This document shows positions 9,262 through 58,571 of a stretch of DNA of 64,000 nucleotides, piece after piece. Below the pieces are notes generated by a model that saw nothing but the letters and a program-made list of their open reading frames with translations, did no database searches and was not told where the DNA came from. Location: the NCBI RefSeq assembly GCF_032062105.1, contig NW_026933222.1, positions 186,001 to 250,000 on the forward strand. The letters are read 5' to 3'. The position numbers and the translations under genes were made by a program. This DNA is from Saccostrea cucullata (lineage: Eukaryota). The number at the start of each line of letters is the position of its first letter. Within the stretch, counting starts at the first letter, position 1.

Positions 9262-9961
9262 TGTAACGTGCCCGAGGTATGAGGCTTATGTAATTTGATC
9301 AAATCTCCAATGAAGGAGATATATTTCATTGTAACCAATATATATGGTATTTCCTGGTAATTTGTTAATTGGTAATCCTTGTTGATTTGGTAAATAAATC
9401 CCTGTGTTGGTCAGTAAAATATTGCATTGCAGAGACAAACAAGAGCACAACATAAGATTATGTAAATTTCAACAATGATTTAATTAACGTAATAAATGTA
9501 ATACAGATGGCTGGATAACCAAATAATCAAACAATGGTGATGTAATACATTTGGTCAGATCGGACGTCACATATTATGATTTGGTCACGTTTTATGATTT
9601 GGTAACGCTATTATGATTTGGTAAAATGATGACTGTTGATTTTCCGTAATAAATCAATTTGGTCAAATGTAAACAATGGTAAAACTTCGTAGAGACTGTT
9701 GAATTCCTTAATAAATCTATTTGGTCAATATAATCTATAGTAAAAACTCCCCAACCGTTAGTTATATCAGTATTTATGTACAATTTCTATGAAAGTTGTT
9801 GAGCAGACGTTCTGCAGAGTCAAACTGAAACTTCAGCGTCCGTGGCGACGCTTATATAGGGTAAACTACCGGACATGCGCAGTGCGCTTTACCTAACCAA
9901 AAGGGAAAGTATAGACCAAAATGGCAGACGATACTAACAACATCGCCGAAGTGGGACAAAC

Positions 9962-12500
9962 GAATCCGGGATGTTTCGCGCCGATTCTGTTTCGCACTGA
10001 GATGGTTCGCGCCAGGATGATTCGCGCCGATATCGGTGCGAAACATCTCCCCCTCTTTTTTTAATATTTCATTTATAATGTAATAAATTAAGATCATTTA
10101 TTAAATCATAGATATAAATATGTGTTGTATGCTCAAAATCATGACTTTATAATATGCGGTGCCACAGGTAACGGATCGTAAATGTTAATATTGTGCCCGT
10201 TTGCTGAGCGTGTGTGTTCAACTATTTAATTGTAATTAGTTGGAGATCAAAAGGTGAGAATTATTTCATTACAGCAATTATAAAGTCGTACAGCAATTAT
10301 CTGCGAAAGCTTGAAAACATATAATTTGTGTTACTGAGAACATGTGTATAGAATAATTCACCAGGATGAGCTTAACATATTTTATTATTAATTTTGATAA
10401 ACTAGGCTTTATAAACGACAAATTATTTTTTCTTTCATCTCTATATTTCTCTACATCAATATTAATTTACAAGTGAACCATCTTTTTTTACGTCGTACGG
10501 TACTCCTCTTCCTATATTAATTTAATACATCACAGGAGCCAGAAAACAATTTATTTCATTCAAAAACCTAATTGTTTTCATTTAAACAAATCAATAAAAT
10601 ATTGTACTTTCATGTCAATATGTTTCAAAATTCATGAGATCAGGTTCTATAGTTTTAAATCCGAAATTAAAGTATTTTTGTGGGAAACTATATTAAAATA
10701 TACATGGACAAAAAAAGGGGGGCAGACAAACTTTGCGCACATGTAGTAACATAGAAACGCTGAAATAAAATTTGAAAGAATTATGCTTATGCAGAAGGAA
10801 ATCCAGTCAAAGCGCCCCCTAATAAAACCGTCCCGGTCAAAGCGTCCCATGATTTTGGTCAAAGCGTCCCCTTTATTTGGTCAAAGCGTCCCCTAATTTT
10901 GGTCAAAGCGCCCTTTATAGAATTTTACAGTAAAATGATGTTACAAAACCGCCCCAAAATATTGGTCAAAGCGTCCCCGGATTTTGGTCAAAGCGTCCCC
11001 GGATTTTGGTCAAAGCGCCCCGTACAGTAAAATGATGTTACAAAACCGCCCCCAAATATTGGTCAAAGCATCCCCTGATTTGGTCAAAGCGCCCCTTAAC
11101 ATTTTTTTCTTAAGAAAAATCGTCTGGGAAGCAATGGTCAAAACGTCCCCGATTTTGGTCAAAGCGTCCCCTGATTTTGGTTAAGGCACCCCCTAATATA
11201 TTTTTACAAACATGTTACGGAATAAAACTGTTTTGTATTTATAATTTTATCATTGTTTCGCAGTTAATTCTATAGGAGGCGCTTTGACCAAAATCAGGGG
11301 ACATTTTGACAATTACTTTGGGATCGACTCGAAACGCTTTTTTCCCTGTAAAAATATATAAGGGGGCGCTTTGACCAAAACCAGGGGACGCTTTGACCAT
11401 TTCTTGGGGACAGTAAAGATTGTTTCTATAAATATATTTTTTTCTGTAAAAATATGTAATTGTTAGGGGGCGCTTTGACCAAAATCAGGGGACGTTTTGA
11501 CTAAAATCAGGCGACGTTTTGACCATTATCATGATTATTTGGGGGCGATATTTTTTCTATAAAAATATGTTAGGGGGCGCCTTGACTAAAATCAGGGGAC
11601 GCTTTGACCATTATTTGGGGGCGATATTTTTCTATATAAATATGTAAGGGGGCGCTTTGACCCAAATCAGGGGACGCTTTGACAAATATTTGGGGGCGGT
11701 ATTTTTTCTATAAATTATGTTAGGGGGCGCTTTGACTTAAATTAGGGGACGCTTTGACCAACATCTGGGGGGAGGTATTTTTTATATAAAAGTATGTTAG
11801 GGGGCGCTTTGACCATAATCAGGGGGCGCTTTGACTAAAATCAGGGGACGCTTTGACTAAAGTTAGGGGACACTTTGACCGGGACGTTTTAATTAGGGGG
11901 CACTTTGACTGGGTCCCTGCAGAAGGGATATTTGATTTATACAATCTACCGGTACATCACCAACTTTTTTTTTATAGGTGCATAGACACAGATCTGAAGT
12001 AAATATATTCTTAAATATTCAAAATTGAAGTTTCAATGAATTTTACATGAAATAAGATTTTTTTTTCCATTTATTTTTATTTGAAATAATGTTAAGTCTC
12101 CAAATTTTGATTCTCCAAGCCAGCAAATTTACGTTGATAAGTTCCCCAAGCCGGCAATGATTACAGAATTACTTAATTAGATGGCGGTATGCTAAAGTAA
12201 CTACTATAAACATAATTATCAGAGTGTAAAAATAATATACAATTAGACTTAGTACTTTTAATAAACTTCTACAATTAAAATATAAACTAATATTCTACAA
12301 AATTTCGATACTTACATCAATATTCACAGATATTATAATTTATTATTTTTTTAATTCTTTTTCAAAATGAACGAAATAAAAAGCATACATTTTATGTTCT
12401 GGGAGCGAAACATCGCGGGGCGAACCATCTCAGCGCGAAACAGAATGGGCGCGAAACATCGCGGTGCGAACCATGCATCGGCGCGAAACATCCCGTTACC
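9962..12500. mobile_element. Non-autonomous DNA transposon with 8-bp TSD (MULE-like, uncertain), inserted in the left LTR
   Basis: TSD GGACAAAC at 9954-9961 and 12501-12508; the intact LTR has one copy. TIR core CGGGATGTTTCGCGCCGAT; subterminal TTCGCGCC repeats. Confidence 0.9.
10798..11917. mobile_element. Foldback-type non-autonomous transposon with 8-bp TSD, nested in the previous element
   Basis: TSD TGCAGAAG at 10790-10797 and 11918-11925. TIR core CCAGTCAAAGYGCCCCCTAAT. Inverted arrays of GGTCAAAGCGTCCCC on the left and GGGGACGCTTTGACC on the right. Confidence 0.9.
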
Positions 12501-13064
12501 GGACAAACCATGAAAAATACGAACAATGTGACGCCGAATCGTAAAACAAATACATAGTAATAAACAATGAAGGTAAGTTGCATAAAAATGTACAATACAA
12601 GTTGCGTATAAGTTAACAATAATAAAATAATGACGTTCGAGGACGGAGAACAATAACCTAAACCCCCCTTGTAAATTAGAATCTTCCGAATCGCCATGAC
12701 CAAAAAGGAAAACAACGTGATCGACAGACACACATGAAAAACGGTATTTACGATCAATTTAAACAATGTACTGTAAGTAAAATGAAATAAACATTCATAA
12801 TAAATACTGTTTCAATCATAAGAGTCCATAATTTTACGTATCAGTCCATATTTCCTCCGTGGTAAACTTGGTCATTTACCAAACATGAAAGTGTAGGATT
12901 TACCAAACATGAAATAATAGGAATTACCAAACATCGTTTTATAGTACACTTGGTAATATTTACAGTTCAAATATAATTGCTGTAAGAGAAATCATGTACA
13001 AATAATGATTACAAACTAATTATACACATATGACATATAGGGGGGGGGGTCTCAAAACACAAAT

Positions 13065-15102
13065 TGATTGAAATCGATTGAAACATTGATTGTAAAGAAA
13101 ACTTAAGGAAGGCCCACACTTTTACGGATCCGGTTCTAATTTTACACATCAATATAAATTTCTGATTTTCACTTGTCTATTGATATAAAATCTTTTTGGG
13201 TGATTGAAAATAATTATGCAAGTATATATTTATTTATTATAGTGTTATTGTGCATACAAAGCATTTTATATACATTGTTTATGGAAATTAACACTTTGCA
13301 CTCTGTCCATAAGATCTATCTGCCATTAAGTACATACACAGACACAAAATTCTTAATTACGTTCATGGACCTAAATCTTTTTAATTTTCTTTTAAGCAAA
13401 CTAACCTGAGATCTATTTTTATTAATTTAAAGCCTATATAATCCATTTAATTATTTCTTTTTAAAAATTTTGCAATGAATAACTTAAAAAATTGATATTA
13501 CAAAAATGGGGGTATACGTATTCAAAAGACTGTTTTGTTAAAATTCTCTGGCCAACCACAATAAAGTATGTATTTTTGGTAACATCAGATATAATTCTTA
13601 ATAGTTTTAAAGAAAAAATGGTATCTAAACAGGTTGGATTTTGAGAATTACAAAAAATGAAGATATTTTGAGATTTTTTTCTGAGAGACTTGGACAGATT
13701 CAACATCAATTTGTTAATGTTTTGCAGTAAAGATTTCAAATATTCTCTTGGCAAATGAATATTTTTGATCTTCATAAGTTTTAACATAAATTTGATATGA
13801 TTTGGTGCATAACTAAAAGAAATATGATATCACACTTCTTCATGTTCAATTTTGGCTGTTGAGTTTTTAGAGGTATGTGCTCTGAGACATGTTTTATGAA
13901 AATTAACTTGCAAAGATATGTCTTTTATGGGTGTTTTAGTTAGTTTAAGACTTATTCAAAGTATTTACATTAAAAAATTATTAGTTTGACAGAAAATTCT
14001 GAAAGTACGGACCTACCTTAAAAGTTAAATATCTTGGAGTTTTGATCGACAAATGTTTAAGTGGTGAATACATTGTTGAATCGATTGTCCAGAAAGTAAA
14101 TAATAGATTGCGATTTCTGTACCGACAGGCCCGGTTTTTAGATACTTTTTGTAAAATGACTGTGTTCAGCATTAATACAATGCCATATTGATTACGCCTG
14201 TAGTGCTTGGTATGCAGGGCTATCCAAAACTTTAAAGAAAAGGTTACAAATTTGTCAAAACAAGATGGTTCGTTTTATTTTGAATTTAGGTCCACAGGCA
14301 TCTGTTAATTACGAAATACTTAGTCAATTAAATTTATTAAATATTCAAGATAGAGTTTCTCAGCTTAGACTCAACCATGTTTTTAATATTTTTCAAGGAA
14401 AAGCCCCTTCTTATCTTAATGAACATTTTATACTACGGTCAAATTTTAGTAGCTATCATACTAGATCAGTCTCAAATGCAGATTTTGTCGTTCCAATAAC
14501 TAAGCAAAAGCAATCTGAATCATTTTATTTTAATGGAATCAAAGACTGGAACATGTTACCAGCAGAAATTAAACCTGTTTTAAATACTGGAAATAATTTT
14601 GCTTTTAAAAGAAGTGTCAAGAAATTTTTATTAGAAAGGGGAATTGCCCAGTGTAAAAGTCAAGTTGTGTTTTATTAGTTTTTATTATTAGTATAAGTTG
14701 TTCCAATTACAATCATGTGAATATTTGGTATACATTCATAATACACTTCATTTTTAAGGATCTCTGTGTTGTCAACTTGATCCCATATCTTAGCTATAGT
14801 ATTTTAATTTTATATTTATCTGCTTATATTATTTAACATCCAATTAAAATATACATGTTTGAGTATAAGGACCCCATTGGAAATAAGCCATTGGCTTTCA
14901 TGGGTTATCCTTGGTATACAAATATAATCTTATGTGAATCAAATTTATTAATTCATGTCTTTCAAAAATGATTGATTCCGATATTTTATATTAATTATAT
15001 TGTTTAATGCCATCTTTTATATATATATATCTTAAATTATATTGTGAATATTGCAACGTATGTGTAGTACTGTATACCAAATAAATATCTATCTATCTAT
15101 CT
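13065..15102 (+). mobile_element. 5'-truncated CR1/L2-group LINE inserted near the end of the left LTR
   Basis: RT C-terminus VKYLGVLIDKCLSGEYIVESIVQKVNNRLRFLYRQA from ~14024, ORF 14265-14678, then AATAAA plus (TATC)n tail. Absent from the right LTR. Confidence 0.85.
13107..14017. mobile_element. Kolobok-like non-autonomous DNA transposon nested in the LINE
   Basis: TTAA TSD at 13103-13106 and 14018-14021. Termini GGAAGGCCCACACTTT and (reverse complement) GGTAGGTCCGTACTTT. Confidence 0.8.
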
Positions 15103-17971: not shown

Positions 17972-18124
17972 NNNNNNNNNNNNNNNNNNNNNNNNNNNNN
18001 NNNNNNNNNNNNNNNNNNNNNNNNNNNNNNNNNNNNNNNNNNNNNNNNNNNNNNNNNNNNNNNNNNNNNNNNNNNNNNNNNNNNNNNNNNNNNNNNNNNN
18101 NNNNNNNNNNNNNNNNNNNNNNNN
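17972..18124. other. Assembly gap (N run)
   Basis: Run of N inside the Gypsy pol region. Confidence 1.
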
Positions 18125-18185: not shown

Positions 18186-18900
18186 TCACCATTGTCTCAA
18201 CTTTGATATTGAACTTGATTTTTTTTTATTTGTCATTTTGTATATTTTCAGCTTCTTGAGAGAAAAATGACGCAGCTCGTCATCCCTTGAGAGTGGGGTA
18301 GCATCATGCGCCACCTGCATTCCTACCCTTCCATGTTTCTGAAATATTGTGTGCTTCCTACTATTTTGGAAGGCTTCAAATTCAAGAGCGAGTTGGACAG
18401 CATCTTCAACAAATTTTGATTTACCTTGGTGGACAGTCCATTCAATTTCATATTTATTCAGTGAATCTATAAAACAGTTCCGAGCCAACTGTTCTCGGCC
18501 TTCAGATGATGCATCTGGATATGCATATCTAACCAACTTTTTAATTCATTATAAAGGTCAGTGAGAGATTGACATCTCTTTTTCTCAATCAATTCTTTAT
18601 TTGTGCTCTGTACAAAGTTTTGTATTTGAACCTCTATGATAGAGTTTGAACTATATAGTTATAAATCTTTTGTATATATATATTCAGTAACAATCACCAT
18701 GAGCACTATTTGTGCCCCCATAAACTTGTTGCAAGCTGAATAGCTTTAACTTTGTTGTTCCCATCATTAAGTTATAAATAAATATGATACAATTCTAAAT
18801 TGAAATTGAAGGTATAAATAATCTCTCCAACTGCTCTTCCCTTCAAATGTTGCAGATTTCATCAGATCCTTAGCAATCATCTCACCAACACACTCAGCAG
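18186..18900 (-). pseudogene. Gypsy gag fragment
   Basis: ATFEGKSSWRDY and VRYAYPDA..REQLARNCFIDSL..AVQLALEFEAF; frameshifted. Confidence 0.8.
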
Positions 18901-21544: not shown

Positions 21545-24075
21545 GCGATCCCACTGCACCACCAGAATCTCTAACCCAGGGGTCATGGATTTCATAGTAT
21601 TTGGAGATACATACTCGTACTTGCTCGGCATAACCATGGAGTACGTTTGTCATCTAAATACCAAGGAGCATAGATTTTTGAAGATTTTATGCATTTTTGT
21701 ACAATCAATAAAACCCCACCCTAATACGAGACTTTTAAAATTATTTCAAGGGCCACAAATTTGGAAAAATGCACCCTTGGCATCCATGACCATACAATTA
21801 TTTTTTCTAGTTAATACCCAAGAGCAGAAAAGATTTTCAAAGGATAAAAGCATTTTATTTATATGTATAATAGATCTTCGCCCTAACATCAGAATCCCTG
21901 ACCCAGGGCCATGAATTATACAGATTTGTACAAAGCACCTTTTTTTCATATTCATGCACATAGTTTGTCTGCCTTCTACATCGAAGCAGAGAAAAATGCT
22001 TTTTAAAGAATTAATGTATGTTCACAATTTGATCAATAGAGCCCCACCCAACATCAGGGTCCCTGATTAAAAGGCAATGAATTTCACAATCTTTGCTCTT
22101 TCTAACCATGCAATAATAGTTGTTTACTTAATAAATGGGAGCAGAGATTTTCGATGAAATATCTTTGATACTGAGAACCCAGTCCTTAGACCACCACTGA
22201 CCAAGGGACCATGAATTCACAACTTTAGAAGATTCATGTACATCCCTGCTTACCATAGTCATGCTCTTAATTTCATCCTCCCATCAAAACACTCCTACAT
22301 CTTTTTGATCACATGATAAAGCCTGTTGCATTATATGGCTGTGAAATTTGGGGAACCCTTACAGCACGCATACAAGATAAAAACAAACATTTATACGATA
22401 TTTTTAAAGAGTGGGAGGCAGAAAGCTTAAATATCAAATTTTGTAAATATCTATTGGAAGCTGGGAAGAAAAGTACTAATATTGCAATAATTTCTGAACT
22501 GGGAAGATACCCTATGTATTTTTCAATTATTCAAAACATCTTATTATACTGGCATAGGTTGCAATCAAGTCCAGAATCTTCCCTGTTACATAAAGCATAT
22601 ACAGAAAATATTAACCTTAGTCAAGGCAATATTAACTGCTGGTACAAAAATGTAATTTATTATAGTAAGAAAATTAATCTCTCATTACCAGAATGTAAAA
22701 CATACAAAAACACATTTTTAAAAAAACAAGTTAAGAAACATTTGAAAAAACACTTCCTACAATATTGGAAAATGAAATGTGAAGAGGGACTGGAATCTGG
22801 AAAACTTACTACTTATTTTATGTTTAAAGAAAATTTTATAATGGAAAAATATATGTACATTAAATCTCATGAAATAAGAAAATCCATTTGCAGATTTAGA
22901 ATAAGTGCTCATGACCTAAGAATTGAAAAAGGCAGATATGAATCTGTAAAAAATAATGCTGGTCAAAGAATCCCCTTAGATAGAAACAAAAGAATATGTT
23001 TCATGTGTGACCAAAACAATATAGAAGATGAATATCATTTTCTTACTGAATGCCCATTATATACTGAGGAGAGAGATAAATTTTTTCGTGATATCTCATT
23101 ACTAAACAAAAATTTCATATTATTATCAAAAGGAGACAAATTTCTCTGGTTAATGTCTAATGAAGATAATCTAATTATTACAAAGCTAAGTGAATATCTT
23201 GTCAAAGCCTTCAAAATAAGGCATAATGCCATGAGTTTTCATAAATAATGTTATAGACACATATTTATTTGTAAACTGGTATATATGTATATTGATAATA
23301 TTGATTTTGATTGCATGTTAATTAACAATTTGATAACCCCAACTGCTGCATCTACATGTCCAGTTACTTGTAATATTATATCAGATATATACATGTGTGT
23401 GTATGTGTGTTTATGTTTGTATATGTTTACTATAACCTTTCTTTTAGAACTTTCTATCTTGTCATTGTAAGAAACCTTTATGCCTTCTGGGCCCAAAATT
23501 GGAAATAAAATTATCTTATCTTATCTTATACTAATTTTCCAAGAGCAGAGAAGTTTATTTAAAGAGTAGTCCTGTTTGCAATAGAGCCCGCTTTACATCA
23601 GAGCCCCTGATCCAATAATATCTTGTAACTTTAGGGACACCTTTACTTAGCATTATTTAAACCATGTACTGTGTTTATGTGCTAAATATACAGGGAAAGA
23701 GATGATTTTGTTAGAGAGAATTTAAGCATTTTTAAAAAAATTATCATTAGAGCCCCGCCTTAACTCAAGAACTCTTGATCCCGGGGCCTTGCTTTTCAGA
23801 ATTTTGGTAAAAAGCTTTATGCTCATATCAATCATATTAACAGTTTGCTTTATGTCCAGGAGTAAAAAAGGGTTTTAAAGCTGGAATTAGTTTTGATCGT
23901 TTTAGCAACATACCTCAAATTAAAAAAAAATGATTTCCTTAAACATTTGATGTTATATTCTAAAAATGATGGAAATTAGTTCAGCGGTTCCTGAGAAGCT
24001 GAAAACGTTAAAGAACGCCGAACAACGACGGACAATAACAGAAAGCAATAAGATGTGTTTGTGAACCACTGATGC
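21545..24075. repeat. Old, degenerate HINE/satellite array related to the 166-bp repeat; hosts a LINE fragment
   Basis: Recurring GCCCC(A/G)CC..CCAGGGGTCATGAATT..GAGCAGAGAAGATTTT motifs. Boundaries approximate. Confidence 0.55.
22285..23530 (+). mobile_element. 5'-truncated non-LTR retrotransposon (RTEX/RTE-related), C-terminal ORF 22313-23248
   Basis: LYGCEIWG, ELGRYP, RFRISAHDLRIEKGRY, C-terminal CxxC..EDEYHFLTEC zinc finger; AATAAA plus (TATCT)n tail. Confidence 0.85.
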
Positions 24076-29900: not shown

Positions 29901-32466
29901 TTTGTTTTCATTTTTTCAGTGTTGCACTTTGATTGAAAACTCACCCGCAGCATTTCAACGATAACTTGTTTATCAGCATGATCTTGTGATAAAAGGTTGT
30001 CTGTAAAACAGAACGAAAACAATAAAACTTATTCGACAAACATATTTATATAAAAATTTAAAATGTTCTTTTAAAAGTAATTGAAGAAACGATTCAATTC
30101 ATTTTAAAAAATTGAAAGTTTCAAACAGATTAGTTGAACAAATATCTATAACCAAATATACAACTTCTAATGCACAGTTCCATCTATAACTCTATATAAC
30201 AGACTAAAACTATAGAAGTACAACTTGGAATGAAATCTAAATTAAACAAAACACAGATTTTGCAAAATTTATTGAAATTCGTAACATCATCCTTTGATAA
30301 GTCATTTTTCGTAAATATGTGTTAATCTAATGCAGTTCTAGTGTAATCATGTTTTTCAAGTGTATTATTGAAATATGATTGAATATCAAAAACCGTGCCA
30401 TATGATATATTAGTTCAAGCAATTTAATTTACAACGATGAAAAATTTACATTGCAAGCATTGAAATCGCCCATTTTTCACCATAAAAAAATAACAGGGGG
30501 CTGCCATAATACTGTAAAGTAAAATGTTTCATATCAAAATCTCTTTCTGATTAGCAAAGAAGGGTGGGAAAAAAGAAAAATGAAACAAAAAATCACTCCA
30601 CTTTAGAAAAGAAGGCATTTAACAGACCGGGATAGGGAAGGGCAAGAGAAAATATTTTGGTGTTAACTCATGGATTTGCTATTTTTAAAAAAAAAAAGAG
30701 AGAAATGTGAGGGGAAAAAAAATCATCGTACACTTGGTTTCATTATATCATTTTCTGGATAATATTTACATATAGCTATTTGCAAAACAGAGAGGTCTTT
30801 TGGACACCTCCTAAATCCGCAAACGATTTGAGCCTTTTTTAAAATTATTTTCGGAATGAGTGGTCTAGACAAAGTGAAACACAAAGAGAGAAACACAATG
30901 AATGGTGGAGAGTTATAAAAGAGAAAACTACAAAACACAGAAATATTGAACCTCTGTCTGCCCTGCTGACTGGAATATATGTAAAGAGTGTGTTAACTGG
31001 ATAATGATAAACTAAATACGTGTATTATTGCTGCGTAAACTTATTTACCTGACCCCACTAACGAAAAAATAAAATACACAACAATATTAGATGTGACAAG
31101 TACATATATCTAAATACAATTCTGTCATAATATACTGTAGATTCCTAAATATACGCATGGAATTAATTATCGCGTCTTTTCCCTCGAAACACCACACGCA
31201 AAATAAAATTACTTGCCTTTATTTTTATGGTGCTGAAATTCATGTAAATTCTCTTGATCAGCCGTCCATTCGCGAGTTATTATTCTCGATCGCGAGTTGA
31301 CGTTGAAGAGACTTTTCGCGATAATACGTACCAGCGAAAAATAAGGAATCTACAGTAAAGTATGTACAAAGACAAAGTCATAGAACTCTCAGGGATTTAC
31401 ATTGTTGGAAGATATAAGTAGTGTAGTGAATCATGAATTTTTGTCCTTCTTTCTTTTCTTTTTTTTCCCCTTGAGATTTGGTCTGATGACCTTCGTAAAA
31501 ACAATAGGACATCAAACAAAATATGTTTATTGTATTTAGTTTTCCAAGAAGTAGCGTTTTGGAGAAACTTTTAACAGATCAAATGCCCCTTGGAACCGTT
31601 ACCCTGTCCAAACTCGAAAATCCTATTTCATGAGGTGGGTATGGGTTTTGATTTTTCTGTAACATTTTGGTAAATATTGTTTTTAAATGCTGGAATTTGT
31701 CTGTCTTCTTTAAAGAAATTGTATGTTATTCAATTTATACTGCATGCAAGTTCTTATCTCTCCTTCATTTTCAGAGAAGAAGTACAGACTTACCAACTTC
31801 TAATCCTGTTTCGTCGTCTACGGATGCAGATCCAAAGTAATCTTTGTCTAGAATGTAAGCGAAAATGACTAAAATAGGGAACATTAAGAGCGTAACGATG
31901 GCCTCCCACAGGTCCACAAAGTCCGGAGTGTTCACCATTAGAATTATTATAAGCCAGACGTAGGCCAACACAGAAAACACAGCGGTGATGGCGAACACCT
32001 TCAACTTTCTGATCCGCCTAGTTTCATTTGCGGGGATCGCAAAGACGCATACTCCACAGATGACCATGAGGTTAAATGCTGCTGACCCCACGACAGTACT
32101 GGGACCTAACTCTCCAGCTTTGAAATCATTGAATACAATTTCAATGATGGAAAGTAGAATTTCTGGAGCGCTAGAGCCGAGGGCCATAAGAGTAAGGTTG
32201 GCTACAGTGCCATTCCAGCGCTTCACTTCTACTGTTCTGTAACCACTCTCGCTGTCGTCTGGAATTTTCACTTCCTGTGTAAAACTTGTAATGGTTGAGA
32301 TGGCTGCCATGAAAATGTCTGCTATGATGGAAATGGCCATAAAGCTCCATAGTAGTCCCACTAGATATACAGTGGCCCGGGCACCAATGGGCCACGTAGC
32401 TTCACTCACGATGGGTAACAGTAGCCCTTCATCTGAGCACGTGTAGGACGTGGGGCAAGTCGACAT
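26955..32466 (-). CDS. NCX: Na+/Ca2+ exchanger paralog B, complete, ~799 aa. Exons 32466-31794, 30000-29945, 29821-29654, 29445-29261, 29114-28885, 28633-28401, 28285-28180, 28073-27895, 27785-27456, 27194-26955
   Basis: alpha-1 ANLTLMALGSSAPE, two Calx-beta domains (DDNVWEPDE; IKDDLEFEKDE), alpha-2 ALGTSLPDLFAS and GNVTGSNSVNVFLG, C-terminal GNAELGGP. All exon phases join in frame (2400 nt). Confidence 0.95.
31132..31357. mobile_element. TA-flanked MITE (CTGTA..TACAG termini)
   Basis: TACTGTAGATTCCT at the left end and AGGAATCTACAGTA at the right end. Confidence 0.75.
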
Positions 32467-32908: not shown

Positions 32909-33844
32909 AATTTTGCTGCAAAGCTAAGTATTATTGTGTGAAATCGTTTTTCTTCTAGATTACTCCTTTGATGGCATAGTTGTCTTCAATACAATGTACT
33001 TGCATATATTTGCTACCCGGTAGTACTGGTCTAAAATACTTTGTATATTTTTTATTGATCAGTTTGTGGGGGGGGGGGGGGTTTGATTTTTGTAAAATTA
33101 TTTCTTAAAAAATAATATATAGTTGATAGTACAACATTTCACTGAGAGCGCAAACACACAGAGGCTCTACAATTGCAAGGTCGAAAACAAAAGAATCAAG
33201 TGATAGTTGTGAAAGTTCATTGAGTCCTTTGATTTAAAATTCTTTTGCAGTGCATTTAAAGTTTATCAATGAACTAAAGGTTTTTTTCGATTGCAAAACA
33301 AAGACACGTGCAATGACTACTCCTACAAGTAAGAGCCTCGGTTAACGTCCCTATGCTCCTTATATAACGCGGCGCCAAGTCAAAAGTATCTCGCCGTGAA
33401 CCTCTAGCATGCTGGAGTAGTGCAATGACATGATCTTCGGTTTTATCAAACCTTTTGTTTCATATTACTATTGTTATTAGTATTATTATAATTAAATGTC
33501 TTTTTTTTCTTGTCTATTTTGAGGCTTTATTTGTGTTTGTATATTTGTATGCTTGTACCAGGGATCTAGTAATACAAAGAATCAAATTGCCTAATTTCTT
33601 GATTTCTTGTCATAAGGCAGATTAATTTGCCCTTTTACCAAATTAATCTCATTTAATTGACGGAAGCACACAGATAATATGGTTAAAACTAATAATGGTA
33701 CGAATTGGCAAAATCGAAGTCATCTTTGTACGAGTTAATTAGTGTGTATCACTTCCGCTTCCGCCACTAAGAAAAAGAGCGCGGCAAAGGAAACCTCCAT
33801 TAAAATTATTATCGAAACAATCTGCACAAACCAATCGCCGGAAA

Positions 33845-34912
33845 ATGCCGCCAGTGAGAAGTAAAGTAACCACGCGGTCAAGGAAGGACCGGGACCGAAG
33901 TTTCGTGTCACCAGGCAGAGGGCGAGGGATCCGGAGGCGACCCAACCATCCCAATCGGCCCCCGCACGAAGTCCCACCAAACACAAGACCATCACAAAGG
34001 GGAAACCCGGCCAGGAGGCCAACCACACCAACGCAACCAGCCACAGTAACGGTGGCGGACCCCATGCTTCACACTGCAGATATCTCAGAGGGCCTGGACG
34101 AGGCCGAGACCTCGAGTAACACGGGTGAGTTAAATATTTTGAGCCTCCCCACAGCAAACGATTTATCTTTTAACACAATCAATGAGGAATTCGACGGCCC
34201 CCCTTTTAACATCTCAGACTACCAACCGGCCCAGACCCCTAGCTGTATAGACCCTATTAGCGCCCACGTCCCCCAAAAAATCAAGCGAAAGATTTGGGAG
34301 GGAAAATTTATTGATCTATCAATAGTATTAAAATCGGCGCGGGAAATCTCAGACCACTTAGATACACAAGGCCAAATACAAATACGTAATGGCACAATGT
34401 GCCTTGTTAAGCAAAAAATGCGCACCTTTTTGTCAATTGACAAATGGACGTCGGCCTTCCTCATCTTTACAAGTATAATGTTAGAAAAATACAGAGCAAG
34501 AGCCCAAGAATTTCTGAAATATATGAGGGACATAAGAATGGCTGCTGATAGATCTGGGAACGGTTGGTTCACCTATGATGAACAATTTAGGCTGCGCAAA
34601 GTAACTGACCCTCATTCATCTTGGGGTATCATAAATTCTGAACTCTGGTTGATACACGTTACAAACAACTATGTTACACAGGCCCAAGGAAATCCCATAT
34701 CCCCCTCACAAAATTCCTACCCTCATCACAAACAGTCCAACATTTCAATGGCTGAGAAAAATGCAAACTTCACATCAAATCGTTACTGCTATGATTTTAA
34801 TTCAGGCAAGTCATGTAAATTTTACCCAAATTGCAGGTTTGTCCACTCGTGCGATTCCTGTGGTGGATCACACCCCTCAATCAAATGCAGTAATAGAAAC
34901 GCCAAATTCTAA
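33845..34912 (+). CDS. Ngaro/DIRS Gag-like ORF1 (355 aa)
   Basis: KIWEGKFIDL, WTSAFLIF, GWFTYDEQFR, W..INSELW and C-terminal CYDFNSGKSC..C...H.CDSCGGSH....C, typical of DIRS/Ngaro ORF1. Confidence 0.85.
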   Translation: MPPVRSKVTTRSRKDRDRSFVSPGRGRGIRRRPNHPNRPPHEVPPNTRPSQRGNPARRPTTPTQPATVTVADPMLHTADISEGLDEAETSSNTGELNILSLPTANDLSFNTINEEFDGPPFNISDYQPAQTPSCIDPISAHVPQKIKRKIWEGKFIDLSIVLKSAREISDHLDTQGQIQIRNGTMCLVKQKMRTFLSIDKWTSAFLIFTSIMLEKYRARAQEFLKYMRDIRMAADRSGNGWFTYDEQFRLRKVTDPHSSWGIINSELWLIHVTNNYVTQAQGNPISPSQNSYPHHKQSNISMAEKNANFTSNRYCYDFNSGKSCKFYPNCRFVHSCDSCGGSHPSIKCSNRNAKF

Positions 34913-35561
34913 CATGGATATCAACAAATTGATACTTTGTCTGCTTATCTACACACACCTATCTAAAATTAAGGACATTTGCTCACCTATGGGGGGGAGG
35001 GATAATTGAACGTTTATATAGTTAATTTTTAACCCATAACTAACCAACCCAAAGCATTGCAGGTCAAAAAATATGGATCATAGGGTCTTCCATTCCTTAC
35101 TGGGCAGGGGAAGCAGCCAAACACTGCCCAGGGGGACAAAGCCTGAACCTCCCTGCCACACTGCAATGGAGAACACACAGGGGGATGCACTGGCATGAAC
35201 TCGACCCAAAAATCCTACAGCTCATCAAACAAGAAGCACCCCCCCATTACTTAGTAATTCATTTAGGATCCAATGACTTGGTAACGCCAAACCTAACTAG
35301 CAAAAAATTCATACAAGAGATTCAGTGCAGCTTCCTGCGATATAATGCCCTTCTCCCAAATACAAAATTGGTGTGGTCACACATTCTACCACGCCGTTAT
35401 TGGCATGGAGCCCCATTGAACAGTGGAAAAAAGATTGACAAGAAACGCAAAAGAATTAACAAAAATATATCTAAATTTGTTACAGAATTAGGTGGGGGTG
35501 TTATTTCTCATGCAAACATATCCGTCGCTAACACAGACTTGTTCAGATTTGATGGAACCCA

Positions 35562-38500
35562 CAGGGCCTGGGAAGGGGCTGCGCCACGCGCCATATGCGC
35601 ATACTGCCGAAAAATGGGGCATTGTAATGATGGTGCGCTGCGCCATGCGGCGCATCCCCAAAAATAATGTAAAATGCGCACACGCATTATTTCTACCACG
35701 TGATTTTATCGAGATCGACGTTATCGGTAATCTTCATCAAAGTTAGATGGAATTGTCCGATGAGTACGGAATGATAGAATCGGAACGCCATTTTTAAATA
35801 CTGACATGCCGCCGGCAAAGAAAATGAAGTTTTCACTTCCACGTGGTCAAAAGACACTAACCTCCATGCAGTTTCCAACCGGCTTAAGTTCAGAAATAGA
35901 ATCGAGTCCAGAGGAAGGAGATACAGCAAATGTAAGAAATGCTGATGCAGAAATGAACAATGACGAGACCAGTAAAAGTGCTGAAAAAAGAAAATTTCAG
36001 TCATCGTGGCTTAAATTGTGGCCCTGGATGATTTACGAATCGGAAAAAATGTTTTGCACTATATGTAAAGAAAGGGGTAAAGACAATATATTTACGCAGG
36101 GTTGTGGTACATTTAAAACTTCGTCATTAAATAGACATGAAAATTCTCAAGATCACAGGGATAGTATACAAGCACAGTCACTTAGTAAAGAGATGAACGT
36201 AGCTGTAGCTAAAATGATGACAGACCACGATTCAGCTTTAATAAAGGCTATAAAGACTGTACATTGGCTTGCCATTGAGAATTTACCACTGTCAAAATTC
36301 GAAAGTATGATGGATTTTCTTAAAGATGTAGGCACACCAAATCTGAATTTTTTACAAGTTGGAAATCGAATTGATTATCAGTCGTACTATTCAGCTAATG
36401 AATTTCTACATGCAATTAGTGATGTGATAGAAGAGAAAACAACTGAAAACCTACAGAAGTCACCATTTGTAACAATATATGCAGATGAAAGTACAGACAT
36501 TTGTAACAAGAAAAGAATGACAATGACAGCTAGGATAATTAACCCAGAAAATTCTAGAGCACAAACTGTATTTCTGAGAGACATTGAGTATGAGAATGGG
36601 ACAGGGGAGGGATTGACTTCAGAGATAATCAAGGAGTTGAATTTACGACACATATCGATATCAAAGGTCCTTGGTTTCGGATCAGATGGTGCATCAGTCA
36701 TGACGGGGTTAGATAAAGGTGTAAGTGGAAGACTGAAAGAATTGAATCCTCACATTTTAAACATTCATTGCATGGCACATAGATTAGCACTTTGCACTGC
36801 ACAAGCAGCAGAAGGAATCCCTGCTCTGAAAAGATACCAAGAGTTTATGACAAAATTATTCTATTATTTTAAAGTCTCAGCAGATAGGGAGAAGGAAGTT
36901 CACAAAGTTCAAGCTCTTTTGGATCATCCCATGCTGAAGTATAAAGAAATTCATGCTGTGCGCTGGCTCTCATTCTACGATGGATTAGAAACCATTTACA
37001 AAACTCTTGATCCTCTTTTAACTTACTTGCACAACCGAGAAGCCAAGAAAGACCCTAAAGCCAAAGGACTCCTAAAGCAAATGGCCACAACGCAATTCAT
37101 CTATATCACCTATCTAATGATGGATGTTCTTCCAATTGTAATGAGATTGTGTCTAACCTTTCAAAAGGATGACTTAGATATTGCTCGTGCTAAGGTACAT
37201 AATAAAATATTGTGCATTTTAATTTACAATACATATTACAAAAAAGCACAAATTGTAATTCTGTATAATTTTATTTATAAATCCACTTTTTTACAAGACG
37301 TTTTAAAATTAGATTTCAGTTGACTCCTGTCTGAGTGAGCTGGAGGCTTTCAAAGAAGGAAAAACTTTCCACACTACATTTGTTGAGCAGTTTGCTTCAG
37401 ATATTACAGAAGTTGATGACCATCCTGAATTCAAAGGACACAGAATTCACAAAGTTCCTGGTGCGAATTTCCAGTCACTTAAGAGCCAATTTATAAATAG
37501 TTTGGTCTCAAATATTAGGAAAAGGTAATTTATTTGGTTATTCCACTCCAGTCATAGACAATTACATACTGGTACACACTACTGTAATAGAAATATTTTT
37601 TTCTTCATTCTGTACATCAACAATAGACTAGACAGATAAGTTAGTTTTAAGAGAACCTACATTAATTGATTAATGTTATTGTTATTAAACAATACAAATT
37701 ATTTGAAAAAAATATCTTTGACTTCAGATTTCCACAGAAGTCCCTGATGGATGCCTTCTATGTCCTGTCCATGCGAGCCATTAATTTCAGTGATGTGGAG
37801 ACATATGGTATTGAAGAAATAAATGAACTTCTTGACTACTACGGAACTTCAAAAGTAACTATTTCATTCTTCAAAATAATTTTATTTGTCAATAAAAAGA
37901 TAATTTCAAATCAGTGGAAAAAAAAATATGTTCATATAAATATACTTACCTCTATTTAAATTGCAGTGTCACAAATCTGCCATCTCACAGCCGGTATTAT
38001 GTGCAGAAAAAGTTAGAAATCAGTGGATGTTGGCCAAGCAGATTGTCAAGTCTGCAAGATACCCAACAGACCAGATGCAAGAATTATGGGAACTACTCAC
38101 AAAACACCATAAAGAAGAATTGAATGAACTGATCAAGCTAGCACAGATTGCACTCACTTTACCCCTGCACACTGCAAGTTGTGAACGAGTGTTCTCCCAG
38201 CAAAACATTATTCTTACCAAGCAGAGAAATTCCTTGGCACCCAAAATTTCCGACCGACTCCTAAGAGTTCGATTAAACAAGCAAGAAACTATCAATTATG
38301 AAGATGTTTTGAAAAGATGGAATTCTTTAAAAAAGCGTATCATCTCTGCTCAGTAGTATCATATTGTTATGATATGTCAATAAAGCAATCCAATAATTTT
38401 TTTGTTTTATTTTATTTGCATTAATTTTATTCTCTGAGAAACAGAGATGTGCATAATCATAGCATTAACAGAATAAGTTCATAATATGACAATTTTTGAA

Positions 38501-38609
38501 AATGGCCCATTGTATTCTCATTCGGCCCCATAACTTTTAAAATGGCCCCATCATTTTAAGAAGAGGGGGGCCATTGGCCCTATCACTTACTTGTCCTTCC
38601 CAGGCACTG
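35562..38609 (+). mobile_element. Full-length hAT DNA transposon with 6-bp TSD
   Basis: TIRs CAGGGCCTGGGAAGG and (reverse complement) CAGTGCCTGGGAAGG; TSD AACCCA at 35556-35561 and 38610-38615; subterminal GGCCC(A/C) repeats. Confidence 0.95.
35806..38356 (+). CDS. hAT transposase (ZNF862-like), 705 aa. Exons 35806-37194, 37313-37524, 37728-37854, 37967-38356
   Basis: N-terminal zinc finger (FCTIC..RHE...H), ADESTD, GSDGASVM, HCMAH, RWLS, TASCERVFS. Three GT-AG introns join in frame (2118 nt); AATAAA at 38379. Confidence 0.9.
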
Positions 38610-41600
38610 AACCCACCTCTCCGAGCTGGGCAACAGAACCTTCTTAAATAATGTAAAAAGTGGTTTGTGGTTCCTTATTCAAGGGAAGGGGAAAGTATCC
38701 CCTAATATAAAGTAATGGAGGAACATCATATCGATGTCTATGGCGGGTCCGGGGGGATAAGTGGGAGGGTTGTGAACATATCTGGCTCGTTGTTTCCTGC
38801 CCAGCCAGCAGATAAGTTGGTGGGCACTTTGTTGGGTAGACAGGTTGTCTACAAAACATCCAACCTATGGCAATGTTTAACAAAAAGTAAAGTAAAATGT
38901 CAAGTAACAAGTTTTTCGATTGGGGTCTTTGCCAAGCCTGCAGGCCTGGGGCCCCCTCTACCTCTTGTAACAGGAGGGGAGGCTTAGTACTGGAGTACTT
39001 GGGTGTTAAAGTACTGCTGACCAGAAGCAATCTCAGGAAGCAGGGTATACAGATGTGCTTGCAACTCTCCCGGGCCCAAATGTCTAGTACCCAAATTTGG
39101 GATCCCAGGCACCTGTGACCAACACAGGGCCACTGGTTTTGCCCGGTACTCTTTAGTCGGTATGCCAGTTGTCCTTCCGGACCCTATTCTTTATTGTACA
39201 TCTATGCAATGCGGCCTATTAACGCCAACTCCCTTTTTGCCCATCACAGTTATGTATAACACAAGATTGTACATGTATCCTTTTTAAGTCTTTAATAAAT
39301 TTAATGAAAACCATCCAACTGTTGTCTATTGCAAAGTTGACACCAAGGAAAGGGAATAGAGACCTTATGAGCATAAGGAATCATGTAGCAATGCAGGTCA
39401 GGCCCCGCAGGGCAGCAATTACCTGACTGTTCAATTAAGGCAGATTAATTTGCCCTTTTACCAAATTAATCTCATTTAATTGACGGAAGCACACAGATAA
39501 TATGGTTAAAACTAATAATGGTACGAATTGGCAAAATCGAAGTCATCTTTGTACGAGTTAATTAGTGTGTATCACTTCCGCTTCCGCCACTAAGAAAAAG
39601 AGCGCGGCAAAGGAAACCTCCATTAAAATTATTACCCACCCACCCACCCCCTTCTAATAAGGGTAACTTTTATACTTATGTGAAATCGCATGCTTTTGGG
39701 GGGGTTGTTCTTTTTCGTGGTTCGTAAACTAGGGGTTGACATGGGTTTCTGGGGGGACTCCTCAGGCCTCAAATACAGCCAAAAATTGGAATGCCACAAA
39801 AGTTTGCTATTCCACAGTACTGAATCCACATGTCCCTATACACAATCCCATATATGAGATGTATCTCTAGAATTTATAGGTATATTGATATATATATACA
39901 TCCCAAACATACCGACAATATTAATATCATTAGACAATGCAACCATTGGCTAATGAAAATACCACCAAATTGCAGTAATCTGCTGTCAGAATTTTTTGCC
40001 TTTTTCAGACACCCAGCAACAAAGAGGGCCAACCAAAATCCAGCTCACAGTAATTGATGTTGAAAAAGGGAAGCCAATCCAATACCAGATCAAAGCCAGT
40101 CCAAAAAGTGATTCAGGACTGTGTCAGTGCGATTAGACTAATGTCAAGTGACAGTAATTATTATGTTTATCTCATAGCCTAATTAAATAGCCAAAATACA
40201 TAAGACCTATCAAAATCCTCGTCGCATTGTATTAAAGGGGGGTGGGTCCGGGGGGATAAGTGGGAGGGTTGTGAACATATCTGGCTCGTTGTTTCCTGCC
40301 CAGCCAGCAGATAAGTTGGTGGGCACTTTGTTGGGTAGACAGGTTGTCTACAAAACATCCAACCTATGGCAATGTTTAACAAAAAGTAAAGTAAAATGTC
40401 AAGTAACAAGTTTTTCGATTGGGGTCTTTGCCAAGCCTGCAGGCCTTCTGTCAATATGTGACCGTTTCAAAAGTAAATTCTAATACATGTATATTTTAAT
40501 TAATATTTATGTTGTTTTCTTATTGTTTTTCTACAAAAATGCAAAATTAAGACTTAAACAAAATATCCAGGTACATTTAAGTCATTTATATACATGTAAT
40601 TGCAAAAGCTATAAGAAGCTTACGATATTTCAAACATTTAAAAACTTGGGGTCAGTATAGAAGGTCTCGCGGCTAATGCATAATTCATTGTCTGGGCTTG
40701 TATATTATGGCCAACTAAATAAACTAAGATTTTGAAATAAATTCTTAACATTTCTCCCTCACCTTTAGGGTTTTAAAATGGGTGTTGACCTATATTTGAT
40801 TTATTTTTAGTGGTGTCATGGAGCGAAGCAATGATCGACGGTTTTACGTCACCAATACACAGAGGTTTTGCGTTCACGTCATCCGTTCTTGTTTTTTAAA
40901 TGCATTCACAAAATAGGTATTTTGCAACAAGGCTCCCCACACAACAGAAATCTTTCGTGTACTAAGTTTTTTAAATGACCGTTCAATAGGTATGGATTTT
41001 CTATAACCATTGATTGGCCAACTCTCTCTCTCTCTTTTATTGTCTAAGGAACTGATTTGAAAAGTAGAGACTGAAACCGATCCAATATTGTGTATATAAA
41101 GCAATTAGCTGCTTGTATTACTAGCTAATAAAATATCAGTAAATAGTAATGAAACTTTTCTTAAAAAAATCTTTTACATGTATAAGAAATGAAATAGCCA
41201 GTGATTCGTACCTGATCAAACTAATCAATTTCATCATCTTGGAATTAAAAAAACCCATAATAGGGTCATTTCCTTTTAATTTGAAATTATATTATGGAAG
41301 TATAATTTATCCAGGTACCCCTTGTAAGCAATGGTAATATATTTTATCCAAGCATTAGTTTATATTATTTGTAGATCATTCTGTTGTGTAAATCAGGTTT
41401 TCTTGTGTTGAATAATTTATCGTAATATCGTCGATAAATCCAACAGGCTGAACCAAACATGACAATGTGGGCATGAAATAATCAAAATATAATGAGGCTT
41501 AGGTATCAATGAAAATGAGTTTATGCTGCAACACTCGCTTTTAGAAGATTCCATTGAGTTAGAAGTGATAAAATATTGATTGCGGTGTTTTAATAACCCA

Positions 41601-54309: not shown

Positions 54310-55565
54310 TTTATTAGCTCTACTGGTCAGAGACCAGAAGAGCTTATGCGATAGTAATGCGTCCGGCGTCCGTCCGTCCGTCCGTCTGTCTAGCTGTCCG
54401 TCTGTCCGTCTGTCTGTAAACAATTTTTCAAAATGCTACTCCTCCTACAGTTTTGATCTAATTTCAATATAACTTGGCACACAAGTAGACTACACTAAGA
54501 TACATAATTCTGTGTATCGGTTTTTGATTTCGATGAACGGTGTTGCCGTGGTTACTAAAAATAGAAATTTCTGTGAAATTCTTTCAAAACGCTACTTCTC
54601 CTACAGTTTTGGTCTGATTTCAGTATAACTTGGCACACAAGTAGACTACACTAAGATACATAATTCTGTATATCGGTTTTTGATTTTGATGAACGGTGTT
54701 GCCGTGGTTACTAAAAATAGAAATTTCTGTGAAATTCTTTCAAAATGCTACTCCTCCTACAGTTTTGGTTTGATTTCATTATAACTTGGCACACAAGTAG
54801 ACTACACTAAGATACATAATTCCATATATCGGTTTTTGATTTCGATGAACAGTGTTGCCGTGGTTACTAAAAATAGAAATTTCTGTGAAATCCTTTCAAA
54901 ATGCTACTCCTCCTACAGTTTTGGTCTGATTTCAGTATTACTTGGCAAACAAATAGAATACACTAAGATACATAATTCTGTGTATCGGTTTTTGATTTTG
55001 ATGAACGGTGTTGCCGTGGTTACTGAAAATAGAAATTTCTAGGAAATTGTTTCAAAATGCTACTCCTCCTACAATTTTGGTCTGATTTCAATATAACTTG
55101 GCACACAAGTAGACTACACTAAGATACATAATTCTGTTTATCGGTTTTTGATTTCGATGAACGTTGTTGCCGTGGTTACTAAAAATAGAAATATCTGTAA
55201 AATTGTTTCAAAATGCTACTCCTCCTACAGTTTTGGTCTGATTTCAATATAACTTGGCACATAAGTAGAATACACTAAGATACATAATTCTGTATATCGA
55301 ATTTTAATTTTGATGAACGGTGTTGCCGTGGTTACTAAAAATAGAAATGTCTGTAAAATTGTTTCAAAATGCTACTCCTCCTACAGTTTTGGTCTGATTT
55401 CAGTATAACTTGGCACACAAGTAGACTACACTAAGAACATAAAGAGACTTTATCAACGATCATTATTCTATTTAGTTTCAAATCCCAGCTGCTTAAGTAC
55501 TTTTCTCCTCCTTTGCTATAAGTTCAAACCAGTAGAGCTGCAGTCTCGACAGAGACTTCTGGTTC
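54310..55565 (+). mobile_element. HINE/Helentron non-autonomous element with ~6.5 x 156-bp tandem repeats
   Basis: Subterminal inverted repeat AGCTCTACTGG / CCAGTAGAGCT, (GTCC)n, repeat units ~156 bp apart from ~54426 to ~55362, 3' hairpin AGTCTC..GAGACT. Confidence 0.9.
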
Positions 55566-56596: not shown

Positions 56597-58571
56597 TCAT
56601 CTTTCAAATTCAGCATACAGTTCATCTATCACAGGCTGAAATGTCTTCCTCAGAACTGGTCTCTTGTTTTTAAAGGTGGGGGTCAGCAAGTTATTCTCAA
56701 GGGAAAATAGTTCGGGAAAAAGATGAATGTTTGCCACCTATAAAAGAAAATTTAATATGAGGCTGGCCTATAATGCACTCTTAGGTAACATTAATCTCTC
56801 TCTGAAATTAATGTTAAAGAGCACTTCCAGCGGGTCACATTCAAAGTCAAAAGTCATATACAGTACCAGCATAACTGTAACAGTGTCTGTAGACATGCTC
56901 CTCAGGAATTTTATATACTGTGAAATCAACAATTTTTGTGGGGGTTAAATTTTGTCGTTTTCAGGGTATGGAGACACCCATGAATTCATGTCCATCAAGA
57001 AATGTCAAATTTTATTTATATATCTATGCAACATCAACATATTCAAATCCCCACAAACCCATTTTTCCCTCAAACCTTAACAAGAGGCCCATGGGCCACA
57101 CCGCTCACCTGAGCACTATTGTAAAGTTTAAATCCTAAAGTTGTCCCATGACCAATCATGGCTTTGCTATTCTTGAGAAAAAGATTTTTTAAGAATTTTT
57201 TCTATATTTCTATGCAAAACTTTGGTCGGCCATTGTGACCCCGCCCTACCCCCGGGGGTCATGATATGAACAAACTTAAATCTACACTTCATGAGGATGC
57301 TTCCATATAAATATGATCAATTATAACTTTGCTATTCTTGAGAAGAAGATTTTTAAAGAATTTTCCTATATATTTCTATGTAAAACTTTGGTTGGCTATT
57401 TTGGCCCCGCCCTACCCCGGGAGTCATGATTTGAACAAACTTGAATCTACACTACCTGAGGATGCTTCCATATAAATATGATCAATTTTGGCTTTGTTAT
57501 TCTTCAGAAGAAGATTTTTAAAGAATTTTCCTACATATTTCTATGCAAAACTTTGGTCGGCCATTGTGGCCCCGCCCTACCCCCGGGGGTCATGATTTGA
57601 GCAGACTTAAATCTACACTACCTGAGGATGCTTCTATATAAATATGATCAATTATGGCTTTGCTATTCTTGAGAAGAAGATTTTTAAAGAATTTTCCTAT
57701 ATATTTCTATGCAAAACTTTGGTCGGCTATTGTGGCCCCGCCCTACCCCCGGGGGTCATGATTTGAACAAACTTGAATCTACACTACCTGAGGATGCTTC
57801 CAAATAAATATGATCAATTATGGTTTTGTTATTCTTGAGAAAAAGATTTTTTAAGAATTTTCCTATATATTTCTATGTAAAACTTTGGTTGGCCATTGTG
57901 GCCCCGCCCTACCCTCGGGGGCCATGATTTGAACAAAATTTAATCTACACTACCTGAGGATGCTTCCATAAAAATATGATCAATTATGGCTTTGCTATTC
58001 TTGAGAAGAAGATTTTTAAAGAATTTTCCTATATATTTCTATGCAAAACTTTGGTCGGCCATTGTGGCCCCGCCCTACCCCCGGGGGTCATGATTTGAAC
58101 ACACTTGAATCTACACTACCTGAGGATGCTTCCAAATAAATATGATCAATTATGGTTTTGTTATTCTTGAGAAGAAGATTTTTAAAGAATTTTCCTATAT
58201 ATTTCTATGCAAAACTTTGGTTGGCCATTGTGGCCCCGCCCTACCCTCGGGGGTCATAATTTGAACAAACTTAAATCTACACTACCTGAGGATGCTTCCA
58301 TATAAATATGATCAATTATGGCTTTGTTATTCTTGAGAAGAAGATTTTTAAAGAATTTTCCTATATATTTCAATGCAAAATTTTGGTCGGCCATTGTGGC
58401 TCTGCCCTACCCCCAGGGGTCATGATTTGAACAAACTTGAATCTACACTATGTAAGGATGTTTCCCCATAAGTTACATCTTTCCTGGCACAGTGGTTCTT
58501 GAGAAGAAGATTTTTAAAGTATACCACCAAATTTTCATTAATTCCCAATTATCTCCCCTTGAATGAGGGCT

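Follow-up and report, generated by a model that had tools for sequence, protein, structure and literature searches.

Animal Ngaro elements are tyrosine recombinase (YR) retrotransposons. Elements such as DIRS-53_XT of Xenopus have the order A1, open reading frames (ORFs), B1, A2 and B2, with a gag-like ORF1, an SGNH hydrolase as the last ORF and no methyltransferase (PMC9210276). In the accepted model, the RNA would be copied into a circle, and the B|A junction of this circle, containing TTAA, would be recombined into the genome by the YR. An element of the same architecture is found in the oyster Saccostrea cucullata, on a stretch of 64,000 nucleotides (NCBI RefSeq assembly GCF_032062105.1, contig NW_026933222.1, positions 186,001 to 250,000 of the forward strand) that is referred to as the window and numbered from its first letter. 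In contrast to the Xenopus element, the window copy is without reverse transcriptase/RNase H (RT/RH) and YR, its B2 is cut, and a hAT transposon is inserted in its hydrolase. The evidence leans toward this copy being a recently inserted, now defective deletion derivative whose parent family was an ordinary, autonomous Ngaro of oysters.

The closest relative, with a DNA identity of 76-90%, is a complete Ngaro of 6634 bp in Magallana angulata (locus L007, CM046778.1), with the order A1 (211 bp), gag, RT/RH (549 codons), YR (316 codons), hydrolase, B1 (701 bp), A2, spacer and B2 (701 bp); TTAA marks its two ends as well as the point where B1 meets A2. This corresponds to the Ngaro layout given in earlier work (PMC9210276; PMC7192593). 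Further full-length relatives are present in M. angulata and Magallana gigas (L001, L008-L016), and the named relatives of ORF1 are all from bivalves, the nearest coming from M. angulata and related sequencing runs. The window copy is 71% identical to L007 in ORF1, 91% and 85% in the first and second piece of the hydrolase, 76-83% in A and 86-91% in B. Both have the TTAA junction, the splice signals and the same length of ORF1, whereas only L007 keeps an intact RT/RH and YR, a complete B2 and TTAA at its two ends.

The element in the window consists of A1, ORF1, a hydrolase split by the hAT, B1, A2, a spacer and the cut B2, all on the + strand, and measures 3780 bp without the hAT, in line with the ~3.8 kb of the original prediction. 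A1 (33613-33811) forms the left terminus, aligns over its full length with A1 of L007 and is, as had been noted, identical to A2 (39436-39634), at 199 of 199 positions. The gag that had been called intact, ORF1 (33845-34912), indeed encodes 355 amino acids without a stop, and its homologues precede RT and YR. The hydrolase follows YR in L007, with neither room nor an ORF for a methyltransferase between the two. The split direct repeats A1...B1-A2-B2 are recognizable even though B2 is cut, and B1 adjoins A2 through a TTAA (39435-39438) that is shared with both ends of L007. Along with the homology of ORF1 and hydrolase to full-length relatives, this supports the earlier assignment to Ngaro, which rests on the repeats and the hydrolase and not on an RT phylogeny, as the copy has no RT.

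The absence of RT and YR was confirmed by a tblastn search with both proteins of a close relative, which returns RT residues 1-24 only (34860-34931). YR has no match anywhere in the 64-kb window, and remnants of the two genes were also sought without success in the rest of the window, including the A2-B2 spacer and the apparent B1-A2 gap. Compared to L007, ~2.47 kb (~11135-13600), comprising nearly all of RT/RH and all of YR, is absent at window position 34953|34954. The RT 5' remnant (34860-34953) continues for 41 bp after the gag stop and has further deletions of 16 bp and 6 bp; its presence means that the copy descends from a four-gene element. Both small deletions are no more than ~30 bp away from the large breakpoint, which would fit a single complex event. 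Downstream, the YR-hydrolase spacer (34954-35062) contains a branch-point-like CTAAC and the acceptor AG at 35061-35062, and the distance from the gag stop to this acceptor is 150 bp, as originally estimated. An origin of the deletion in a retro-copied spliced RNA was rejected, as the junction precedes the acceptor by 109 bp and is not of the GT-AG type.

Two further observations concern the internal structure of these elements. In P0308, known from its protein sequence, a gag N-terminus close to that of the window copy (72%) passes at codon ~128 into the peptide from the start of B1; this is probably another, separate internal deletion within the same group of elements. Furthermore, the synonymous divergence (dS) between the window copy and L007 is uneven, the gag core having 0.79 and the first hydrolase piece 0.38, and the 5' and 3' halves may have been joined from different subfamilies by recombination.

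The B repeats had been described as 203 bp in length. Their identity over this length stands (38745-38947 and 40244-40446, 203/203), but the true B is longer: window 38742-39438 aligns over all of the 701-bp B of L007 at 86%, so that B1 (38745-39438) is ~694 bp long and adjoins A2 via the shared TTAA, the predicted circle junction. B1 carries AATAAA at 39294, and the 488 bp that seemed to separate it from A2 are its 3' part. B2 (40244-40446) stops after 203 bp with the loss of 491 bp and the right terminus, and the missing 491 bp are found nowhere in the 64-kb window. The element is thus not the tidy complete unit that had been supposed; it ends at 40446 and not at 40453, with 40447-40453 belonging to the flank. 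Over the 402 bp of A and B there are no substitutions (95% upper bound 0.74%), which supports the proposed recent insertion.

The left junction of the window copy reads ATAA instead of TTAA, A1 starting at TAA and the flank base being A. TGTCA occurs just left of A1 (33608-33612) and again 2 bp right of the cut B2 (40449-40453), a possible target duplication with a chance probability of ~0.7%, although the match was spotted post hoc and local repeats occur in the left flank. This pair may mark a faulty insertion in which one end was joined correctly and the other was repaired. Such a match of the two flanks, which can also be read as 9 bp with one indel (33604-33612 vs 40446-40453), is unexpected for a YR insertion. 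With its RT/RH and YR not intact, its right terminus missing and a possible duplication where none is expected, the copy departs from an autonomous Ngaro. Two other origins of the B2 end were rejected: a poly(A) site of the RNA, for which the signal is at B position ~550 and the cut at 203, and the insertion of another repeat, as no remainder of B is present downstream and the right flank matches no fetched sequence. The A2-B2 spacer (39635-40243) has 609 bp and is ~170 bp longer than that of L007 (~440 bp), to which window 39654-39926 does not align.

The hydrolase carries the SGNH blocks GSS, G, GxND and DxxH. Its first piece (35063-35562) holds the GSS serine at 35086, GxND and DGTH, and its second piece (38611-38715) the C-terminal helix and the stop. 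The element separating them, already recognized as a hAT in the original prediction, is intact (35562-38609) and has 15-bp terminal inverted repeats and a 705-aa transposase with the hAT dimerisation domain, encoded by four exons (35806-38356) with the introns in place. The insertion point directly follows the DGTH histidine codon, so that Ser, Asp and His all remain on the upstream side and the last helix (32 aa) is severed. The target duplication, AACCCA, is 6 bp in the window (8 bp if terminal bases are included), compared to a hAT norm of 8 bp. The first exon is 100% identical to an S. cucullata protein, and the hAT bears the annotation 'zinc finger protein 862-like'. The assembly contains a second copy (L027, 9757-12805) with a difference at 1 of 3049 bases (99.97% identity), which points to a very recent jump; this second copy has a 7-bp target duplication and is intronic, within a DEAD-box/SPRY helicase gene. 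No Ngaro sequence was found around it, and L027 was rejected as a second copy of the whole element, the shared part being the hAT only. The retained introns of the hAT and the near-identical copy elsewhere suggest that the hAT arrived after Ngaro integration. Its AATAAA at 38379 should end Ngaro transcripts early.

The hydrolase has no in-frame ATG before the catalytic Ser, neither in the window nor in any of five full-length families. A phase-1 splice acceptor is located within a few codons of the hydrolase motif in the window and in each of the five families (chance ~0.001-0.004), and phase-1 acceptors also precede the RT and YR frames of every one of these families, although the YR acceptor overlaps conserved RNase H codons, which makes its conservation weaker evidence. 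A putative phase-1 donor lies in the 5' region of gag, in the window at ORF1 codon 94 (34122-34130, cut at 34124|34125 with the exon ending at 34124). The same 9-mer is present in L007, L001 and L028, and the candidates in L002 and L003 are weaker. In L007, the predicted donor is at 10283 and the predicted acceptors are at 10993, 12588 and 13706. This agrees with RefSeq models at the M. gigas locus L019, in which 10001-10367 is joined to RT and to the hydrolase, with exon boundaries deduced from model lengths and protein sequence. Judged by these signals, a single leader exon from the 5' region of gag appears to be spliced to alternative acceptors in oyster Ngaro elements, and RT, YR and hydrolase would each be expressed in this way. 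The window copy retains the donor and both remaining acceptors, of which the putative RT acceptor (34834-34837) would here lead into a dead frame with a stop at 35009; the copy could still make ORF1 and a truncated leader-hydrolase. No description of alternative splicing in Ngaro was found in the literature searched, key older papers lying outside its scope. The splicing model would explain the expression of overlapping, often ATG-less Ngaro genes and is maybe the more lasting result.

ORF1 is called gag by position only. It has a low-complexity N-terminus, a helical core and C-terminal CCCH/CCHC zinc fingers, and its only sequence matches are to CCCH zinc fingers. The structural models are confident, with a predicted local distance difference test score (pLDDT) of 87 for residues 121-355 and of 92 for residues 135-280. 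The core (34247-34684) is predicted to be a helical domain with a beta-hairpin (pLDDT 92); it matches no solved structure and has 4865 relatives at E <= 0.001, but no Pfam family. With Foldseek, neither model matched anything in PDB at E <= 0.001, and the longer one, the only one compared with BFVD, had no match there either. The proposal that the element supplies particle proteins is therefore not sustained, as the confident models match no capsid or Gag structure, and a role in RNA binding is a safer inference than particle formation. Measured against M. angulata, the ratio of nonsynonymous to synonymous substitution rates (dN/dS) amounts to 0.07 in the gag core, 0.20 in gag as a whole and 0.12 in the first hydrolase piece (range 0.07-0.37). 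These values lie below 1, which had been named as support for a satellite element, yet they do not discriminate, covering all time since the split from Magallana including the autonomous period. A test for relaxed selection on the window branch, which has low power, detected no excess of amino-acid change.

In the favoured reading as a damaged one-off copy, the parent would have been an A1-gag-RT/RH-YR-SGNH-B1-A2-spacer-B2 element. The loss of RT/RH and YR, evident together with the two small neighbouring deletions, would have taken place during reverse transcription or repair. Most of B2, which is plainly missing, would have been lost at or after insertion, and the hAT would then have entered the hydrolase, after the Ngaro insertion, its poly(A) signal and introns being expected to block faithful full-length RNA. 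The gag and hydrolase would look intact because the copy is young. As the copy has already suffered at least one, probably two, large structural hits with no substitutions in its repeats, a third needs no special cause. Furthermore, 29 of the 30 gag-bearing relatives with context run straight into RT, the other being a bare fragment, and YR lies directly upstream in all six hydrolase-only contigs; these relatives come from about six families, mostly of other species and from repeated runs, and were partly chosen for long contigs. The probable internal deletion of P0308 and the closeness of the small deletions to the large breakpoint point the same way. Several points weigh against this reading. 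The species and long-contig bias of the relatives would miss a short family specific to S. cucullata. In addition, little more than RT and YR has been deleted, and the gag stop and the hydrolase acceptor on either side are untouched, an outcome with a probability of ~4e-4 to 6e-3 for a random deletion, tempered by the fact that a scan selects striking cases. All three deletions are in the dispensable remnant, and none is in the 520 codons of gag and hydrolase. Such neatness leaves room for the copy being a damaged member of a replicating non-autonomous subfamily that resembles plant TR-GAG elements, a possibility that we hold to be real but distinctly less probable. This subfamily would have a ~4.3-kb form and obtain RT and YR in trans from full-length relatives; the deletion of the two genes would predate the insertion, and ORF1 and the spliced hydrolase would have been kept, acting best in cis. 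It fits with the retained donor and hydrolase acceptor, the low dN/dS of gag core and first hydrolase piece and the lack of an amino-acid excess. The split-repeat model requires as templates no more than the B1|A2 junction, which is intact here, and the 5' part of B2. The mechanism is possible as well, as the RT of DIRS-1 can work in trans (PMC7192593) and TR-GAG elements transpose in plants (PMC8704663). A helper of matching type exists in Magallana (L007); the one S. cucullata relative that was reached, L028, belongs to another family and has frameshifts. Against the subfamily, the right end of the window copy is broken, the dN/dS and rate tests cannot separate autonomous time from the time after the deletion, and every relative with context is full length. 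No second copy with gag and hydrolase only was found, other oysters included, the S. cucullata genome not having been searched at the DNA level. The protein search reached only candidates of 0.55-1.75 times the query length, a metagenome scan gave one distant gag fragment, and a 50%-cluster search gave relatives without context. In exact look-ups of the window proteins, ORF1 was absent from the protein collection. None of these blanks bears on DNA copies in the genome.

The remaining explanations are far less probable. Collapse or mis-joining of repeats during assembly could have removed RT and YR or the end of B2, and the 100% identical repeats and the single assembly seen would allow for this; the deletion junction, however, is in unique internal sequence without an N run or long repeat, is accompanied by two separate small deletions and is part of a locus within a 558-kb contig, which makes such an artefact very unlikely. 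Even less credit is given to the original suggestion of a bipartite system, in which a partner with the same A/B termini would hold RT and YR and lack gag and hydrolase. It is favoured by the complementary look of the missing genes alone, whereas the nearest relatives with matching A and B (76-91% identity) hold all four genes in one element, as does L028, a second and decayed S. cucullata Ngaro family without shared A/B, and the RT remnant points to the same four-gene ancestry. No such partner was found among the loci long enough to judge, which are mostly from other species and were retrieved with gag and hydrolase queries that bias against finding one, and no paper on a bipartite or gag+hydrolase-only Ngaro was found in the literature searched. 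Least probable of all is a domestication of ORF1 or the hydrolase by the host. ORF1 is intact and lies ~1.15 kb upstream of, and head to head with, the start codon of a sodium/calcium exchanger gene, but the identical repeats indicate that the insertion is very young, the hydrolase has already been split, and the gene table of the locus lists no ORF1 gene.

The element is located between this exchanger gene and an L7Ae-family gene, and the locus L026 (GCA_032062105.1, JAVVLV010015359.1) is identical to window 25806-48356. The apparent first coding exons of two tandem exchanger paralogues are found at 715-1401 and 31771-32466, both on the - strand, with ~70% DNA identity over 191 bp; the Ngaro copy, ~1.15 kb upstream of the second, could affect its expression. 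Elsewhere in the window, which contains an N run at 17972-18124, one repeat is present in two places with 99% identity (9255-9961/19853-20563 and 12501-13064/20556-21123). Its first copy is interrupted at ~9960-12500 by what is probably a non-autonomous transposon nested in it, a block that contains tandem units of 22 bp and 75 bp as well as internal inverted repeats. Tandem arrays at 54422-55442 (156 bp, 6.6 copies) and 57148-58519 (166 bp, 8.3 copies) are probably oyster satellite or Helitron-related repeats, and ORFs at 14265-14678 and 22313-23248 resemble, by eye only, C-terminal fragments of the reverse transcriptase of long interspersed nuclear elements. L028 has frameshifts in RT and YR, and a search for split direct repeats in it gave none; 321 bp located downstream of its hydrolase (14491-14811) recur inverted at 18299-18620, 3.5 kb away, with 96% identity.

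Three groups of known elements outside the animal Ngaro are of use for comparison. The best match of the hydrolase profile to a solved structure is the ORF1 esterase of ZfL2-1 (PDB: 4C1B, E 5e-4), with which the window hydrolase shares the SGNH motifs. This esterase, in contrast, belongs to a non-LTR (long terminal repeat) element and has been shown to be active and to bind lipids (PMC3905857), whereas the Ngaro enzyme is known from its sequence. TOC1 of Chlamydomonas (10.1101/2022.06.16.496473) and SIRE of Trypanosoma cruzi (PMC6681497) are, like the window copy, non-autonomous derivatives of YR retrotransposons with split-repeat ends; SIRE consists of the A2-B2 region only, and neither is described in the cited papers as keeping gag and hydrolase. 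The plant TR-GAG elements have termini and an intact gag without pol, as seen here, but are derived from LTR/Copia elements, depend on helpers with a DDE integrase, have no hydrolase and are multi-copy with transposition demonstrated (PMC8704663), compared to one damaged copy in the window. As a one-off the oyster copy matters little, broken retrotransposon copies being common. If the short form proves to be a family, it would separate the Ngaro proteins that an element must encode itself from those that other elements can supply, point to a cis-acting role of the SGNH hydrolase and offer a natural test of hydrolase function; such a trans-mobilised subfamily would be the counterpart of TR-GAG among the tyrosine recombinase retrotransposons.

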